Origin: Blastocystis sp. Blastoise
Lineage: Eukaryota > Protista > Bigyra: Opalinata
NCBI GenBank assembly: GCA_039096225.1
Contig: JBBPEB010000021.1
Span: 930,001 to 994,000, forward strand
Reading direction: 5' to 3'
Length of the DNA: 64,000 nt
A program made the translations under genes and the position numbers. Numbering within the stretch: position 1 is the first letter of the stretch; each line of letters starts with the position of its first letter. Under the pieces are notes generated by a model that saw nothing but the letters and a program-made list of their open reading frames with translations, had not been told where the DNA came from and ran no database searches. Shown in pieces: positions 26,033-62,285 of the stretch.

Positions 26033-27146
26033 TTTCATATAATAATATTTCATATAATAATAAATATATTGCTTATAATAATAATATAAATGATACATTT
26101 CAGCCGAATCAATATTGGGTAGAGCAATGAAGAATCCTAATAATCCTGAGAATATATATAAAATAGGAGGAATTCCAAATATATATCTTCGAATAATAAT
26201 GTTTTGTATGGGTATAATATGCTCAAAGAAAAGAACAATACACACACTATATATATATATAATATATATATATAATGCAGAGATATAAAGAGAATAGTAG
26301 TAGACTAATTACATATAGAAACAATACTAAATATTACGAATAAATTAAAAAGAATTATAATTATTATAATCGATGAATAAAGCAACAACAACAAAATAAT
26401 ATGAATAATAAGTATAAAATAAGCAAAATGGTTATTATGAATATATATATATACGATAAAGAAGGGAAGATTGTGAAGACCATATAAGAGAATAGAGTAC
26501 TATTAGCAGTTTTATAGCAGAAGAAGGAAACAAGAATAATAGTAACCAAAAAGAAATATACAGAAAGCGCAAAACGAAGATATTTCTTATCATTTTGTTT
26601 TATACAAGATAACCGTAAATATCCGAAGATTTGGTCCGATTCGTCATCTCGAAGCATTTCATAAGGATGTTTATTAAAGTAATATAGAAAACAACTTGTG
26701 ACAATAATATTTATAGACGATAAAATGATGGCACAAATGCATAGATATTGATGCATAGATAGCCAGATTGCATTATACACTAATCCGAGGGCATTCCATA
26801 CAATATAAGTATAGGATATAATAGAAGCGACTGTTGAATGTATTTTTTCAAAAAATTGAGAATCTGACATCCAGTAAAACATATATGCAATAATTGAACA
26901 CATAATTGGGTTGATCAGGTACCACCATTCAGTTACGTGATAAACTTCTTTGAAGAATTCAAACCATGCTATTATAATACAGAAAGCTGCTGAAATGCCT
27001 AGATTAGCGTGACGAATTAAGAAAAGTATCGAAGAACAACATAATTGACAAGAATAACATTAAATAAAGGATATATAGTAATAGATCTTGAATTTCTCTA
27101 TCCCTTTATAAGGATGTTCACGAATATTTTTTTTTTCGATTTCCAT
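25796..27146 (-). CDS. multi-pass membrane protein of unknown function, containing a U12-type intron
   Basis: ATG at 27146 (MEIEKKNIREHPYKGIEKFKIYYY). The AT-AC intron 27009-27074 joins in frame to ANLGISAAFCIIIAWFEFF... and ORFs 26364..26903 and 25796..26245. Many hydrophobic segments. Confidence 0.7.
27009..27074 (-). other. minor-spliceosome (U12-type) AT-AC intron, 66 nt
   Basis: 5' end ATATCCTTT, branch-like TTTTCTTAAT, 3' end CGTCAC. Removal keeps frame and deletes an in-frame TAA. Confidence 0.85.
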
Positions 27147-27309
27147 GAACGAGAATCATATAAAATAAAATTTAAAAGAAAAAATCTGTTTCTTTTTGAT
27201 TTTCACACTGAACTTTTTATCATAATCACGAAACTATTCCATTTTCTTTTTAAATACTCTTTGCTATTTCTACATGAATATTCACTATGGACATTTTGTG
27301 TTTTTTTGA

Positions 27310-28110
27310 CCCTATTTCCCGTAAGAGAAACAACAAAATGACTGGGATTTTTTAATCAAAAATACGTTGGCCTAAACTCGAGAAAAGAGTGTCCGCCAAC
27401 TTGTCAAGTTTCTCTCTTTTTGACGAGAAAAACTTAAAAATAACTCTACAAAATATATTGTTTATTTATATAATCATAGACATTCTAAATATTGACTATT
27501 TTACAGTGTTTTATGATTTAAAATGACTGTTTAAAACCAAAAAGACTTTAATTTTTTCTCTGAAGTCTATAATTCAGGAATGGATTACATGAGTGACAAA
27601 TTTTTTAAAGTTGTGTGTTCTCTGAGTGATGTATTATCATTTCAATCATTCTCGTCAAGTCCTTTTACAATAAAAACCATTATACAGCCTAAACCAAAAC
27701 ACACCTAAAAATTTCTTCTTTTTTATTTCCCAAGGAAAAAACAATAAAATGACTTGACTTTTTTATTCATCATTTTTTAGCCTAAAGACGACAACATTTC
27801 TTTCAGCCAACTACCCTAGAAAGTCAAAACAATTAAAAATTCAAAAAAGAAAAGTAAAACGGAAGCTCTTGTTTTTGTTTATTGATTATCGTCATTAAAC
27901 CTGTTTTTAAAAATATGACTTTAGAATATCATTCAGGACTTGATTTATAGTTCAGGGTATCGTTTTAAGGTTTAAAATAGCTTTTTTTTGAGAGAATTCA
28001 TAATTATGTCCTAAACCAAGAGGAGTTGTGTGTTTTTATCATCTCTGTTGTTAGATATGTGTATACACAACATACTCAGCTTCACATAATTGTTTTTCTT
28101 GCTAGTCAAG
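27310..28110. repeat. left subterminal region with a degenerate ~410-bp duplication
   Basis: tatttccc...aaaatgact...gcctaaa...gccaact at about 27312-27400 recurs at about 27723-27812. ttcagga...gttgtgtgtt also recurs at similar spacing. Confidence 0.6.
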
Positions 28111-28909
28111 ATTTTCACTCATTTTTAAATATTTGATTTTTAGTCTCAAAAGTGGTATAGAGTCTCTATACATGCCTGTAAGAATCGTTTTTAATACTAA
28201 AAAGTCAAAAATATTAAAGAAAAGTGACAGTGAAAAAAGGAGGGAAAAAATACTTTTTTTGAGTTTCTTGATATTCCCGCAAAAATGATTTTTCTTTTAA
28301 GACCTGAATACACCCATACGCTATTGAGCCTATTAACTTAGAAAATATTTTCATTTGTTACTTATTTTCTTTATTTTTATTTTATTTTTATTAGCTGTTA
28401 TTTTAAAAAATAGAAGTTGATTTTAACTTCAGATTATTCTCTTGTATGTATATTACTATTTTTTATTCTTTATCAATATTAACATTCTCCCATTCTCTAG
28501 CATGTATAGGTTCCTGCTCGTCCATGGTTATAAGAGTCCTCTTCAGTCCATGTCAACAACGTCTATGATGTCAAACTACTTTCAAAGTATATATGTATTT
28601 ATTTATTTTTATAATTATCTCTAATTTTTTTCTTTGTTATATTTTTAAGTATTATATAATAGAGTACTTATCGTATATTCATTCTATCTATTATTAGCTT
28701 TCTTTTTGTTTTTTCTTAAATTAGAATCTAATTCATTTTATTATTTATTTTCATTATTTTTATATTTTTATTTATTATTATTTATTTATTTAGGTTGTTT
28801 TCTACTGTTTCTGTTGGTTATCTTTCCCTATGACTCAACATCACCAAATTCATTTTTTTCTATTAGGTATGTTTATTTATTTATTTATTTATTTATTTAT
28901 TATCTAGTT

Positions 28910-30917
28910 CTTCTTTATTTCTTCTTCTTACACAAAATGATTCCTTCTTCTCTCTTCTTCATTTTCTTCCTTCTACACTTTTATCTCCTTATTTCTTCAT
29001 CTTCTTTCTTTATTACTTCTTCCTATGCCTTGTCTCCAGCCTATATCCTTGTCTCTCCCTTTGATTCATTATCTTCCTCAGATCTTCATTTTTCTTTTAT
29101 TTTTTCTTCTATCTAAATTCCTTTATTTTTCTTTTTTTTAATTATACCTCTCTCTTATCTTCGCTTCCCTTTTATATCACTCTTTCATTACTCTTTCTTA
29201 ATCACTATTCTATTTACATTGTATTTCGTTATGTCTTTTTCTTTTATCCTGTTATCCTCTTCTCCTTATTCTATACTTCTTTTTCCTCGACATGTATTAG
29301 TGTATACCCTCCTTTTCTTCCTCTTCCTCTTCTTCTTCTTCTTCTTCTCCATATAATTCTTTGCTTTTTTCAGATCTTCATCTTCTTATTTATATTTATA
29401 TCACTATTTATTATATATATAGTTCTCTTCTATTATTTGCCTTCCTCCTCTTCCTTCTTTCTATTCTTCTCATACTTCTTCTCTCCTCCTTCTGATTCCC
29501 TTTTTTTTACTGCCCTATTTTCCTTCTTTATCTTCCTTCTCTCCTCTTTCTGTATAATTCTATCTCAATCTTCCTTCTCTCCCTCTCTATTCTCGTATCC
29601 ATCTTTATCCTTATTCTTTTTCCATTTATTTCTCTCTGTCCCTGTCTATTTTATCTTATATGTCTCTTTCTACCTTCTTGTTTCCTTTTATATTTCCTTC
29701 TATGTCTCCTTTTCCACTTTATATCTACTTTTTTTTCTCTCTCTCCTTCTCTCTATTATTATATATTCTTATGTTCTAGTTATCTATTTTCTATTTTTAT
29801 TTCTATCCTTTCATTCTCTATATTGTTATATCTACTTCTATTTTGTCTCTTTTCTTCTATCTTAATCTTCTATTTAATCCTTTTATTTCTTTCTATATAT
29901 CTATATCTTCTTGTCTCTAACTTCTTTCTTAATCTCTTTTATATCCTTCTATTTCTCCTTCTATCTCTCCTTCTTTCTCCTTTTCTATTTTCTTCTAACC
30001 ATCTTTTTTCCTATTTTTCTCTTTCTATCCCTATTATCTCATTCTCTATCTTCTTCTATATTCTTCTTCTTTCATCTTCTCTCCTTCTTCCTTCATCTTT
30101 CAATTTCCTTCTCTATCTTCCTTTTATCTCAGCTACTCCTTCTGTCTCAATCTTCAGTCTTTCCTTTTCTTTCTCTTTCAACATCATTCTATCTCTCTGT
30201 ATTCCTATATTTCTCTTCATATTTCTCTATCCTTATCTATCTCATTCTACCTCATTTATGTGTCTCAATCTCATTCTCTATTTCCTTCTATTTTCTCTTA
30301 TCTACTTATATCTTCGTATATTTCCTTATATCTACGTATATCTACTTCTCTATCTTATTATATCTCCTTCTAACTTAATTTACTTCCTCTTCTTCTTTTT
30401 CTCCTTCTATCTCCTCTTCTATCTCCTCTTTATTCTCCATCATCTTCTATCTACTTCTCTATTTCCATCTACATCCTTCCATCTTACTACATCTCAATCC
30501 GTTTTCTCTCCTTCTATATCCTTTTATATCCTTTTATCTCTCTTTCTCTCTTATCCTATTTATTTTTCTTATTTCTATCCATTTCTATCTACTTTATCTT
30601 CTCTATCTCATTCTATTGTATCTATATCATTCTCTTATCTTTCTATCTCCTTCTATTTTTAATCTTTTCTATCTACTTCTCCTTCTCTATTTCCTTCTAT
30701 TCACTTCTATATACATCTCATTCTTCAAATCATTCTATATTCTTCCCTTCTTCCTTTTAACTCTTGCTATTTGTTTTTATTTTAATCTACTTCTCTCTTC
30801 CCTCAATCGACTTTTATCTACTTCTCCTTCTCTGTTTGATTCTATCTCCTCTCTATCCATATTTTCCTTTTTATTAATATTTATCTCCTTCTCTATATCT
30901 TTCGGTATTCTTCTATC

Positions 30918-30990
<73 letters not shown>

Positions 30991-32700
30991 ATATCTATCT
31001 ATTTATTTATCTCAATCCCCTCTCCCCTTCTATATATTTTATTACCTTCTATGTCTCTACCCTATTTCCCGTTTTCTTTCTGTCTCTTTCTTCTCTCATA
31101 TACTATTGTTCTATCTTTTCTTTTTTTATTCTTCTTTTTTTCTTCTTTGTTTTTTCTATTATACTTCTTTATCTTGCTTTGTCTCTCCTTCTCTCTATGT
31201 CATTCAAATTATAATTCTCTCTATCATTCCCTATCGTTTTCTTTGTATGTATTTTTCTTTCTAATTTTTTTCTATATAAATTTATCTTTCTTGATATTCA
31301 CTTCCTGCTCCTTTTTTCTCCCTTCTTCGTCTCATCTTCTTTTCTTCGTCTTCCAATTCTATCTGTTTTCCTCCTCCTTCTCTATCCTTCTCAATTCCTC
31401 TCTACCTATCTTTATATTCTTTCTTTTTTATACACCTTCCCTACTCCTCTATTTCTCTTTTTATCTTTATTCTTGTATCTATTTTTATCTTATTCTCTAT
31501 TTCATTTGATTTCTTTTGTATATCTCTCATTCTATATAGAATTCTATCTCTTTCTATCTAATTTCTTCTTTATGTCTCTCTTTTCTTCTTTCTTTCTATT
31601 CATCTATTAGTGTATCTATCTATTTATATCTTTGTATTTTTTTTCTCTCTATCTATCTATCTATCTATCTATCTCTTTTATTTCTTTATATCTTTCTGTT
31701 TCTCTATATATGTTTCTTGTTTATTCTTCTTTTCTTTTCTTTCTCTTCTTCTTCATTTTCTTGTATATCTTCTTCCTATTCTTTATCTTACTTTTCTTTC
31801 TTTTTTTCACCTCCTTCCTTGTCTCTTCTTCACATTCATCCTCTTGTTCTCTTATTAATCTATTTATTCTTTCTTATCATTATTCTATTTATTCTTCATC
31901 TTCTTGTTGTCATTATTCATTTCCTTCTTCTTATTCTTCCTTATCTTCCTTATCTTCTTATTCTTCTTCCTATTCTTCTTCTTCTTCCTTATCTTCTTCC
32001 TATTCTTCTTTTCTTCTTCTTCCTTATCTTCTTCTTATTCTTCCTTATCTTCCTTATCTTCTTATTCTTCTTCCTATTCTTCTTCTTCTTCCTTATCTTC
32101 TTCCTATTCTTCTTTTCTTTTTCTTCTTCCTATTCTTCTTTTCTTCTTCTTCCTTATCTTCTTCTTCTTCTTCCTTATCTTCCTTATCTTCTTATTCTTC
32201 TTATTCTTCCTTATCTTCTTATTCTTCTTCCTATTCTTCTTCTTCTTCCTTATCTTCTTCCTATTCTTCTTTTCTTCTTCTTCCTTATCTTCCTTATCTT
32301 CTTCCTATTCTTCTTTTCTTCTTCTTATTCTTCCTTATCTTCTTCTTATTCTTCCTTATCTTCCTTATCTTCTTCCTTATCTTCTTCTTATTCTTCCTTA
32401 TCTTCCTTATCTTCTTCCTTATCTTCCTTATCTTCTTCTTATTCTTTATCCTCTAATCCTCTTCTCTTCTGCATTCCTTATTATTATAGATCTCTATATA
32501 TCTATCTTTGTCATTTATTATAAATTATTTTTCATTTTTTTTATTAATCTCAATAATTAAAGACCCTATCTCATTTACTTTATATTTCTTTCTCTTTTAT
32601 TCTTTTTTACTTCTTTTCCCTTCTTCTAGCATCCTTTTTCACTTATACATATATAAATATATCCTTACACATCATACTGACTCATTATTCCTACTATTTT
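28910..32700. repeat. ~3.8-kb pyrimidine-rich (C/T) low-complexity tract inside the transposon, including (CTAT)n and a TCT/TAT higher-order minisatellite at about 31920-32450
   Basis: The + strand is almost devoid of G. Overlapping F/L/S/Y ORFs occur in several frames, as expected from composition alone. Confidence 0.85.
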
Positions 32701-34650
32701 ACTTTCATTTATGTATTTTTATTCTATATTATCCTTAAGCTTATATTGGTAAGTATCTATCAGTTTATGATAGAAAACAGGTTCAATTCCTGTCTTAAGG
32801 TCAATTACATAACTAATTCTTTATATATAGGTATCAATAATTATATTATATTAATTTTTTCAAAAATTATCTATTCAAATAGATGAAGATAAATTAGATC
32901 AATTACTATTTTTTCTTTACATATGTATTTATTTCATCATTGAATGCATTGATAATATATAGATCAATCAAAAATAGCATTCAAAATAATCTTTTTAACA
33001 AAAAGAGACACAATAACATTCAATTACTTCTTAAGTGTATTATAAAACAAAATAATCTTCTCAAAAGATTATTCAAGTCGTTTTATAATGAGTATATGTG
33101 AAAAATTAGTTTAGTTCAAAATAATAATTCTATTTTTCAAAATTATATTATCAAATGATTCTGCGTAATTTTTTTTTCATATAACCACTATACCCTTTTA
33201 CACAAGAAAATAATCATTTAAATACATTTTTAAGTTGATAAACAATAAATTAAGAATTTATTCTTGTTAAAAAACAAAATTCTTAGAAAATATTACTAGA
33301 ATCATACAAATAATCAATGCAACTATTCAATTATACACCTTTAACGTGATTTAAGACAAGTCATAAAAATGGAGATTCTCAATATTTTATATTTTTTAAC
33401 TAATTGATATTTTAATAACTTTTAAACTTCATTTAAACACTAAATATGTAATATAATATGTTTTTGTCATTTTCGAAATTAGAATATGTATTTCAAATAA
33501 TTTTAGTTTTACTAAAAATCACTTAAAATGAATACACAGAGTTTGTAGACAATAAATAAATTATGAATAAAACTATATATCGATATAAGACTTTTTTTGA
33601 CAAAAAAGTGATTTTTGCATTTGTTTTATAATAAACTATCAACACGACTCCGACTATTCAACTAAAAATATATAAAATATGATTTTTGTTTGTTTATACG
33701 TATATTTGATAATAGTAAGTCCTTGAATACTAGAAAAAGTTCTTGCTGAGTAATTATAAAATACTATTTTGATTTGTTTTTGATATTATTTAAATGAAAA
33801 ACACTATTTGCATGAAAAAATGCTTACTCTATGTATTTCAAGTCTATTTAAAGGTATTAGAAGACTTTAACTTGATTCCAATTATTGCTTTAATTCACTT
33901 TTAAAATGTTTTTACCACTCTCTTTGTCATATTATGATAACAGATTAATAAAAAATCGGGACAAATACATTAAAAAGATAATATTTCATAACATTTTTCG
34001 ACTCTAGACCTTTTTATCTTCATTTTCTTTATTTTATAATTTTATTGAAGATATGTGATAAAACTGATTCTTTAAATAATGATTCAGGCAATCATTCTGG
34101 ATTATATAAATGACTTTTATTCTGGAAATAGAAGTTTCAGAGTCTTCTCTATAAGTCTGTATTGTAACCTATATTTATTTTTTAAAAGACTTATACTTAC
34201 TGAGTGATACTAAAAATAATTTTGACAATTAAGGATAAAAATCACTCTTCCATAGTCAAAACTGATTATAAAATGATATAATGATAAATAACTATATAAT
34301 TCTTTAAAATAAAACAATTTTTGTATTACTTATGATAATTATGATAAATTGAAAATAACAATAACAATATCCATTTTCCTCATAGAAATAAAATTTTTCT
34401 TTCTCTTTTATTCTTAACCATTCATTTTTCTTATGATGAAGATTCTCTATATTTAGTAGATATGAGATTATTCATGTTTATTTTCATTATTTCAGCTATA
34501 TCTTCTAAATTCCTATTACACCCTTTTATAACAAAACAAAATGCTACATGACTTATCACATATTTATTTTATTATATCTTATATGATTAATATGATATAT
34601 TATTAAATTTTATTTTTATTTTATTATATATGATACTATTATGATGGTAG

Positions 34651-35340
34651 GTGTTTGCTGTTTCTTTATATTTTATTTTTTCTACTCTATTCATTCATTT
34701 TCTATAGTAGCTGTCTCTGCTTGGTGTTTTGACACTTGCTGGTCTCCTTAAACGTTCTGGTCCTTCTTGTGTGTGGTCGTGGCTCTCTTATAGGTATATA
34801 TATATATTTTCTTTTTATAATTATCTTTATAGATGGGTTCTTTAGGTCTAGAATGGAAGGAATCAATGTTAAAAGAAGGTATATATCATCTATATTATCT
34901 ATTACATATTATATAACTAACCCCACTTTATATTTATATAGCATTAATGTATATATTTATATTTTATTATTCTATATTAATTTACTTTATTATATATTAT
35001 TATATTATATAACTTACTCTATCTTTATATAGGTTTCCAGGGGTTCCGTTGCTGTCGTTGTTGTTAATTGGAGAGAATGGTTTATAAAAAGTATATATAT
35101 ATATTTAATTATATTGTTTTATTCATTATACTATTTATCATATATCTTTTATAGGATGGTTCTTTGTCTTTGATTCCTTGCCTGTCTTGTAATGATTAGA
35201 AAAGGTATATATTTTTTATTTTATTATTATTTTAAAATGTTATATATATATTATTATTAGTAATACTTAACTAATATCATCTCTTTATATAGGTTGCTTA
35301 GGCTTAAATGCAAATTAAAGACTGAAACTGTCCTGGTTGA
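34651..35340 (+). other. chain of host-type GT-AG introns separating short GC-richer exons inside the transposon; coding status unresolved
   Basis: Donors at 34651, 34794, 34879, 35091 and 35205; acceptors at 34707/34710, 34832, 35032, 35154 and 35292 (four share TCTTT(T/AT)ATAG-like ends); TGTTTGTT at 35471-35478. Confidence 0.6.
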
Positions 35341-35645
35341 AATATTATAAATTAAATATTATATATATTTTATTATATTATTTATTATATGTTTTATTAT
35401 CTTTTTTTTATATATTTATTATTATTGTTTTCTATTATTTGTTTTTATGATTATTTGATAATATTTAATTTGTTTGTTTTGTTATATCGTTTATTATTAC
35501 ACCACAAAAAGAATAAAAAAAGCCAATAAATGAAAAAATAGAGAATATTTAAAACCATTTTTATTCGCCAATTATTGTTTTAAGGTGCGTCATACTTTTG
35601 CACTGCTTTTCGATTTTATAAAATCACTGAAACTCTGACAAAAAA

Positions 35646-35848
35646 TTTCACTGCTCACCACTGGGGAAACCAAAGCAAAAAAGTCGTTGGACCTTTTGTC
35701 AGCTACCCTTTAAAATTTTTTCACTGCTCCACCACTGGGGAAACCAAACAGAAAAATCAAATAACCTTTTGTCAGCTACATATTTAAAAATTTTCACTGC
35801 TCACCACTGGGGAAACCAAAACAAAAAAGTCGTTGGACCTTTTGACAG
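35646..35848. repeat. right subterminal tandem repeat, 3 copies of about 72 bp
   Basis: ttcactgctc(c)accactggggaaaccaaa...ccttttg(t/a)cag at about 35646, 35719 and 35791, adjacent to the right TIR. Confidence 0.9.
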
Positions 35849-36359
35849 AAACCTGAAAAAATGTCCATAGTGATTATGTATTCCAAATAAATTATTATTG
35901 TTTAAGATTTTGATTTTTGTTTAGTCTCAATTTAAAATAGAATAATAAAAAATGGGTTTGAAAAAATATATATTAGTGATTAATCAGCGTGTAAGTTGAG
36001 TATTTGTTATACTTAATGCTCTTAGATGATTGAATAAATACGTATATGTATAGTGGATATCATGTTAACGTAGAAAACAAAATGAATAGACAATAACAAG
36101 TATATGTATACTTCAATATTACAGAATAAAAAAATAAAAATAAAAGAATCAAAAAAATTAAAACTAAGACGAATAGTGAAGTATTATCAAATAAATAAAT
36201 AAGGTTATGTATAATAAACCCCTATATATATAAAGGAAAGATAAGAAATAAAAATCAAGAAACAAAAAAATAGTGTTATATTAATAAGAAAAAAAGATTA
36301 AAAATTTTATGTATTTGTATTGTGTATATGTAAATATAACATTAATATGGATATATATA

Positions 36360-41482: not shown

Positions 41483-44789
<3,307 letters not shown>

Positions 44790-49724: not shown

Positions 49725-61986
<12,262 letters not shown>

Positions 61987-62212
61987 ACGATCCACAATTT
62001 ATATGTATATATAGAATAATTATTTCATATATTTTCTCTTCTTCACTTTTCAATACTCATAAAACTCTATATTCCAAGAGGATATAATGGTTTTATATTC
62101 AATTATTCTTTATTAACACTAGTGACATATAAAAATTTGCTTTGTTTTTAGTAATTATAAGAAACAATTAAAAAAATGTTTTAGTAACAAAAATATAAAG
62201 AATAAAAAGAAG

Positions 62213-62285
62213 CGCCCACCGGGGGGCTCGAACCCCCGACCACCAGGTTAAGAGCCTGGCGCTCTACCGACTGAGCTAGACGGGC
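62213..62285 (-). tRNA. tRNA-Lys(CTT)
   Basis: The reverse complement GCCCGTCTAGCTCAGTCGGTAGAGCGCCAGGCT-CTT-AACCTGGTGGTCGGGGGTTCGAGCCCCCCGGTGGGCG is a 73-nt cloverleaf followed by a T-run terminator. Confidence 0.97.

Follow-up and report, generated by a model that had tools for sequence, protein, structure and literature searches.

A multi-copy, probably non-autonomous transposon family with CACTA-type ends in the tortoise isolate Blastocystis sp. Rus-B

The CACTA (CMC/EnSpm) superfamily of cut-and-paste DNA transposons is defined structurally by CACTA termini and a 3-bp duplication of the target site. In the maize En/Spm-I/dSpm system and in other plant CACTA elements, 5'-CACTA...TAGTG-3' termini lie in short terminal inverted repeats (13-28 bp class), the 3-bp duplication is variable, and subterminal repeats are found by at least one end. 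Plant CACTA families include non-autonomous members that rely on a transposase supplied in trans. The Tpn1 family of Ipomoea and elements of the Pack-CACTA type are several kilobases long, have intact ends and no transposase, carry an interior with exon- and intron-like segments, and have been amplified as a unit. Here we describe an 8.6-kb element of Blastocystis sp. Blastoise that shares most of these traits. It occupies positions 27283-35872 of a 64,000-nucleotide stretch of contig JBBPEB010000021.1 (assembly GCA_039096225.1, positions 930,001-994,000), hereafter called the window. Very probably it belongs, as one of many copies, to a non-autonomous family of cut-and-paste DNA transposons of Blastocystis sp. 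Rus-B, and is by its structure a CACTA (CMC/EnSpm) element; its nearest analogues would be large non-autonomous CACTA elements with passenger DNA.

According to the main text of PMC10690189, strain 'Blastoise' is Rus-B, was isolated from a Russian tortoise and has a genome of 33.3 Mb with 23% G+C; tortoise isolates contain 5.6-7.5% of transposable elements and about 12% of low-complexity sequence. Transposons in tortoise Blastocystis are thus already known in bulk, and the same main text has no mention of CACTA and describes no individual transposon families (PMC10690189). In the older ST7 genome paper repeats were only masked. In the available literature we found no description of this element family, nor of any Blastocystis transposon family. 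The first-pass annotation of the window, made from the letters alone, had correctly guessed a Blastocystis-like host; its premise that such genomes are transposon-poor is only loosely true for this lineage, given the transposable element content cited above.

At its two ends the element carries CACTATGGACATTTT as an inverted repeat that matches perfectly over 15 bp, with ATT immediately outside each end, as the first-pass annotation had stated. In this copy the inverted repeat is effectively 16 bp long by accident, with the flanking T and A also pairing. To assess its significance inside the window, we counted inverted pairs within 20 kb in 100 block-wise dinucleotide shuffles of the window. 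An inverted pair of at least equal information was present in 51% of the shuffles (mean 0.67), and the probability of a 3-bp flank match by chance is about 0.03. Within the window alone, the inverted repeat by itself is therefore at the chance level, and for this reason it is not relied on below. Neither further copies of the element nor shared motifs were found elsewhere in the 64-kb window. The evidence of the first-pass annotation, taken alone, is suggestive, statistically weak and not compelling. A second perfect 15-bp inverted pair of similar information content, GAATGACTGTGAATA, is located at window positions 44273-44287 and 52559-52573, consistent with chance.

The case for a mobile element is made by its other genomic copies. 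These were identified within GCA_039096225.1 by exact look-ups of two annotated products inside the element (the tag proteins of 134 and 248 amino acids in Table 1), which are encoded identically at 10 and 11 contig positions; a variant open reading frame (ORF) taken from one copy yielded two further copies by the same kind of look-up. In total, at least 14 distinct copies were found on 10 contigs, namely contigs 2 (three copies), 4 (two copies), 5 (two copies), 7, 9, 17, 21 (the window copy), 28, 29 and 32. The copies are 8547-8590 bp long and together make up about 0.36% of the genome. The perfect 15-mer is present at the left end of all 14 copies and at all 13 intact right ends; in the remaining right end, of copy A on contig 4, it is split by a nested copy. 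Target-site duplications of 3 bp are perfect in 12 of the 14 copies (TAA, ATT, CAT, ATC, GGA, TAA, ATT, GAT, TCT, TTC, ATC and ATA) and comprise nine different triplets; the other two copies are one base off (AAA/AAG and ATT/TTT). Flank matches stop at exactly 3 bp, none extending to 4 bp, and the flanks of the copies are mutually unrelated, with no target consensus. By our own arithmetic from base composition, 12 perfect duplications among 14 copies at about 0.03 each would occur by chance with a probability of the order of 1e-16. Because 14 copies share perfect 15-mers and 12 of them carry differing perfect 3-bp duplications, the element is mobile far beyond any chance explanation. The 15-bp termini are the exact boundaries of the moving unit at 14 dispersed loci, and integration duplicates 3 bp of a target without an evident consensus.

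All copies found are of this full-length kind. BLAST comparison of the element with all fetched flanks revealed no partial or diverged copies, the only resemblance being of low complexity, to a C+T-rich tract at locus L005, and no partial or longer relative was present in the approximately 300 kb of the 33-Mb genome that were read. In metagenome scans, the left-end 22-mer had no matches, and a 19-mer core of the 73-bp right-end repeat unit had six single chance matches in unrelated contigs richer in G+C. An exact look-up of a window protein in a collection of protein clusters gave no entry.

The two copies on contig JBBPEB010000004.1 are nested (locus L024, 7414-20822, and locus L025, 1-15996). 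The nested junctions read ...AAAATGTCCATA / CACTATGG...CCATAGTG / ATAGTG / ATC: the inner copy entered the right terminal repeat of the outer copy, 3 bp from its end, and ATA was duplicated. The left flank of the outer copy ends in ATC, which is its own duplication. Since the undisturbed terminal repeat is seen in the other copies, the state of this target before insertion is known, and the nested site lets one target be compared before and after insertion, with the empty site built in.

The copies are 99.9-100% identical, and transposition was therefore very recent, in agreement with the first-pass annotation, which had suggested recent mobilisation. In the main subfamily of 11 copies, which includes the window copy, pairwise differences range from 0 to 12 substitutions per 8.5 kb; between the window copy and the copy at locus L003 there is not a single substitution. 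The second subfamily, formed by the copy at locus L020 and the two copies on contig 4, has one or two substitutions internally and differs from the main subfamily by about 30 substitutions and a 33-bp insertion at window position 29861. Nearly all of these substitutions fall into one divergent patch (Table 1), where local divergence is about 10% against near identity elsewhere. This mosaic pattern suggests recombination with a more distant relative, itself not seen among the sequences at hand. The window copy alone contains a 39-bp GT...AG segment, absent from the other 13 copies, that is, an intron-like piece precisely present or absent among otherwise identical copies. It could be a private insertion or, equally, an ancestral piece deleted in the progenitor of the other copies.

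The termini and duplications described above agree with the CACTA superfamily: 5'-CACTA...TAGTG-3' ends in short inverted repeats are found at the 14 left and 13 intact right ends, and the 3-bp duplication has no fixed sequence. Other superfamilies were considered and rejected. PIF/Harbinger elements duplicate TWA (TAA or TTA), and only two of the 14 duplications are TAA. The duplications of Transib (5 bp), hAT (8 bp), Mutator (9-11 bp), Tc1/mariner (TA) and piggyBac (TTAA) elements do not fit flanks that match over exactly 3 bp. Miniature inverted-repeat transposable elements (MITEs) are non-coding, shorter than about 800 bp and present in high copy number; here, the copies are 8.55-8.59 kb long and about 14 were found.

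The subterminal regions agree with the CACTA pattern only in part. The first-pass annotation had claimed repeat arrays at both ends, and this holds for the right end, where a 73-bp unit is repeated 2.9 times with 80% matches. The array abuts the right terminal repeat, and its last unit extends by a gap-free match to position 35862, inside that repeat. At the left end there is no array; instead, two dispersed copies (27313-27401 and 27724-27812) are 71% identical and lie 411 bp apart. After removal of the 15-mer, the left and right subterminal regions had no significant similarity in either orientation, and a k-mer check of the two regions found only CAGTGAAA, with no repeated 9- or 10-mer in common. 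Compared with plant CACTA elements, the ends have only the CACTA of the termini in common, and the left and right subterminal regions are without a common motif.

The interior of the element has no recognisable transposase. The interior contains a pyrimidine-rich low-complexity core, which includes (TCTA)n at 30918-31012 and repeats of 9, 21 and 30 bp at about 31860-32450. Long ORFs are found in several frames of the plus strand of the core because stop codons, which need A and G, are rare there; the opposite strand has no long ORFs. As the first-pass annotation had foreseen for a gene finder, the existing annotation reports two spurious phenylalanine-, leucine- and serine-rich ORFs in the core (Table 1). 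A homology search with the 134-amino-acid ORF returned no match, not even to itself, presumably due to low complexity. A tract of at least 5.5 kb at locus L005 (1-5500), outside any copy, has the same composition as the element core (T 57%, C 27%, A 13%, G 3%) and no called genes, and pyrimidine-rich tracts of this type are thus a feature of the host. On both sides of the core, short exon-like islands, richer in G+C and with splice-like borders, add up to clearly less than 1 kb, and stops interrupt every frame. We scanned 105 stop-free pieces of at least 30 amino acids from both strands singly against Pfam. None matched, and no transposase family was among the results, in line with what the first-pass annotation had said of the interior; the best E value, 0.006, is expected by chance for 105 queries. 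In particular, the CMC-clade DDE transposase (Pfam Transposase_21 with its associated domains) is absent from the element in this piecewise scan. The Rfam search found nothing in the element at either gathering or relaxed thresholds, and a scan for bacterial-type promoters and terminators carries no information here, the host being a eukaryote. A transposase of several hundred residues would not fit into the sequence outside the low-complexity core, where too little of the DNA is not A+T-rich.

The element differs from En/Spm in having no transposase or TnpA-like gene, and in its host, a stramenopile gut protist with 22% G+C. In contrast to the Tpn1 family and Pack-CACTA elements, most of its cargo is a 3.6-kb pyrimidine-rich low-complexity tract like those of the host itself, and the exon-like islands are at most candidates for captured host-gene sequence.

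Because no transposase gene lies inside it, the element is most likely moved by an enzyme encoded elsewhere. By analogy with the established behaviour of cut-and-paste elements of this structure, a DDE transposase would be encoded by an autonomous relative with the same termini. Acting in trans, it would bind the terminal repeats and probably also the 73-bp array at the right end, cut the element out at its CACTA ends and reinsert it by way of cuts staggered by 3 bp. On this view the pyrimidine-rich core of 3.6 kb, like the exon-like islands, would be passenger or decayed sequence, amplified as a block. Some observations speak against such a non-autonomous CACTA element. No transposase of any kind was found in the element or, by transposase domains sought in the gene tables, in the approximately 300 kb read, and for this reason the superfamily assignment depends only on the termini and the length of the duplication. 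Classical CACTA elements have many short motifs, repeated in direct and inverted orientation at both ends; here the array is restricted to the right end, and the 15 bp of the termini are all that the ends have in common. Not one of the 14 copies is shortened, whereas deletion derivatives do not usually form such a uniform family, and the interior could matter. Finally, the near-identity of the copies could be slightly inflated by assembly polishing; given their unique flanks, the copies themselves are unlikely to be artefacts of the assembly.

These observations bear on several alternatives. It is unlikely, although the most probable of the rivals, that the element belongs to another or new superfamily of cut-and-paste elements with 3-bp duplications and that its CACTA start is a coincidence. 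There is no transposase on hand by which to classify it, the subterminal architecture is atypical for CACTA elements, and its first seven bases, CACTATG, resemble the heptamer-like ends of Transib-type elements. Against this, the duplications are varied and exactly 3 bp long, a misfit with all of the superfamilies rejected above, and CACTA termini together with a 3-bp duplication are the very structural definition of the CACTA superfamily. A similarly doubtful, somewhat more remote proposal is that the genome has no CMC-type transposase and that the copies are kept whole since their interior matters: an unrecognised or host enzyme could move them, or a spliced non-coding transcript or the polypyrimidine core could aid mobilisation or maintenance. 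Were this true, the family would stand for a new mode of mobilisation of an element with CACTA ends. We consider it improbable that the element is autonomous, encoding its own enzyme in a cryptic gene, for example in the annotated low-complexity ORFs or in a large number of very small exons joined by splicing. The full length of every copy, the exon-like islands with GT...AG borders on the plus strand on both sides of the core, the 39-bp segment precisely present or absent between copies, and the plus-strand genes called by the annotation pipeline would all agree with a cryptic gene. However, the islands are too short in sum and interrupted by stops in all frames, conservation across the subfamily patch fails for one of two islands, and no piece matches Pfam; the annotated ORFs are phenylalanine, leucine and serine runs that arise on a strand poor in G (about 3%) and A (13%), and the space outside the core does not suffice for a transposase.

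An equally improbable scenario is a recent burst that is now stranded, either because the partner was lost or because the enzyme was a transposase domesticated by the host or visiting horizontally. A single burst would leave a tight, star-like cluster such as the copies form, and no partner was seen in the available sequence. Yet less than 1% of the genome is too small a sample for the absence of a partner to carry weight, and both subfamilies have recently moved, including a nested insertion between copies that are two substitutions apart, which suggests sustained activity. That an inverted repeat arose by chance around ordinary intergenic DNA of low complexity, or that the locus is a segmental duplication and no transposon, would be compatible with the shuffling result for the window alone, but this reading has a negligible probability and is already refuted: similarity of the 14 copies starts and stops exactly at the 15-mers, their duplications differ, their flanks are unrelated, and one copy is nested in another. 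A non-autonomous CACTA family mobilised in trans thus remains the best explanation of the locus, and the coordinates of its window copy are given in Table 1.

Table 1. Features of the window copy of the element and of its immediate flanks (positions in the window)
Feature	Position	Strand	Comment
Left copy of the target-site duplication (ATT)	27280..27282	.	Matches the 3 bases after the right end
Left terminal inverted repeat, CACTATGGACATTTT	27283..27297	+	Identical at the left end of 14/14 copies
Left subterminal region, two dispersed direct copies of ~90 bp	27313..27812	+	Not a tandem array
Two G+C-richer exon-like islands with ...AG / GTAT... splice-like borders	28497..28867	+	Poor coding capacity; no Pfam match piecewise
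Pyrimidine-rich (C+T) low-complexity core	28900..32470	+	GC skew down to -0.83, AT skew -0.57
Annotated 134-amino-acid 'hypothetical protein'	30258..30662	+	Spurious F/L/S ORF; used as copy-finding tag
Annotated 248-amino-acid 'hypothetical protein'	31710..32456	+	Spurious F/L/S ORF; used as copy-finding tag
A+T-rich interior of ordinary complexity	32471..34690	.	No ORF, no Pfam match, no Rfam match
Run of short exon-like islands with GT...AG-type borders	34700..35345	+	Stops in all frames; scanned piecewise
39-bp GT...AG segment with TTATAG on both sides	34784..34822	+	Window copy only; absent from the other 13
Divergent patch between subfamilies	34944..35271	.	Nearly all of the ~30 substitutions; ~10% local divergence vs near identity elsewhere
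Right subterminal tandem array, 73-bp unit x 2.9	35640..35848	+	Last unit runs to 35862 by gap-free match
Right terminal inverted repeat (AAAATGTCCATAGTG on the + strand)	35858..35872	-	Identical in 13 copies with an intact right end
Right copy of the target-site duplication (ATT)	35873..35875	.	Matches the left flank

According to the gene tables, all 14 copies are located between annotated genes or at a gene edge. At locus L007 (7028-7039), the start codon annotated for a gene of 2334 amino acids is an outward-reading ATG within the left terminal repeat (MSIVSVMD...), and a second in-frame ATG lies six codons downstream. At locus L012 (7030-7056), a gene model of the HAD family ends in the element, which supplies its last nine codons and its stop. 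Three copies are found within about 150 kb on contig 2, and this clustering, together with that of the two nested copies on contig 4, hints at local reinsertion, the numbers being small. One copy on contig 2 (locus L009, 2163-6876/15706-20405; JBBPEB010000002.1, about 394-414 kb) is situated in the non-palindromic spacer, approximately 273 bp long, of a 100%-identical inverted duplication. The arms of this duplication are at least 4.7 kb long, and genes for RIO1, SUI1 and a ribosomal P-protein recur in mirror image on either side; the structure may be a genuine palindrome or a fold-back artefact of the assembly.

The window has a G+C content of 22-25%, and a neighbouring gene product is annotated as 'hypothetical protein WA158_006264'. 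The left neighbour gene has an annotated start at 26870; an ATG at 27146, oriented like this gene and just 137 bp away from the element, opens a short frame apparently followed by an intron, and the gene model may be incomplete at its 5' end. At window positions 43679-43836 and 53066-53313 there are very long (ATT)n/(AAT)n microsatellites, oppositely oriented, and in many ORFs of the window long stretches of poly-I, poly-N or poly-Y occur. The sole RNA gene detected in the window is a tRNA-Lys (CTT) on the minus strand at 62212-62285.

Only if the missing transposase turned out to be absent or unconventional would the family count as a new type of system. Otherwise it is a further family of the already known CACTA type, relevant to Blastocystis genomics and annotation. 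For annotation, at least 28 'hypothetical proteins' (two per copy) are probably spurious artefacts of low-complexity DNA, and at least two gene models are flagged as having a start or an end drawn from transposon sequence. For the biology of the organism, the family offers precisely defined ends, a defined target-site duplication and signs that it moved very recently and may still be moving, and the element is a concrete handle for finding the responsible transposase. Its insertion polymorphisms are on offer as strain markers. We know of few genetic tools for Blastocystis, and the element is a candidate starting point for a transposon-based one.

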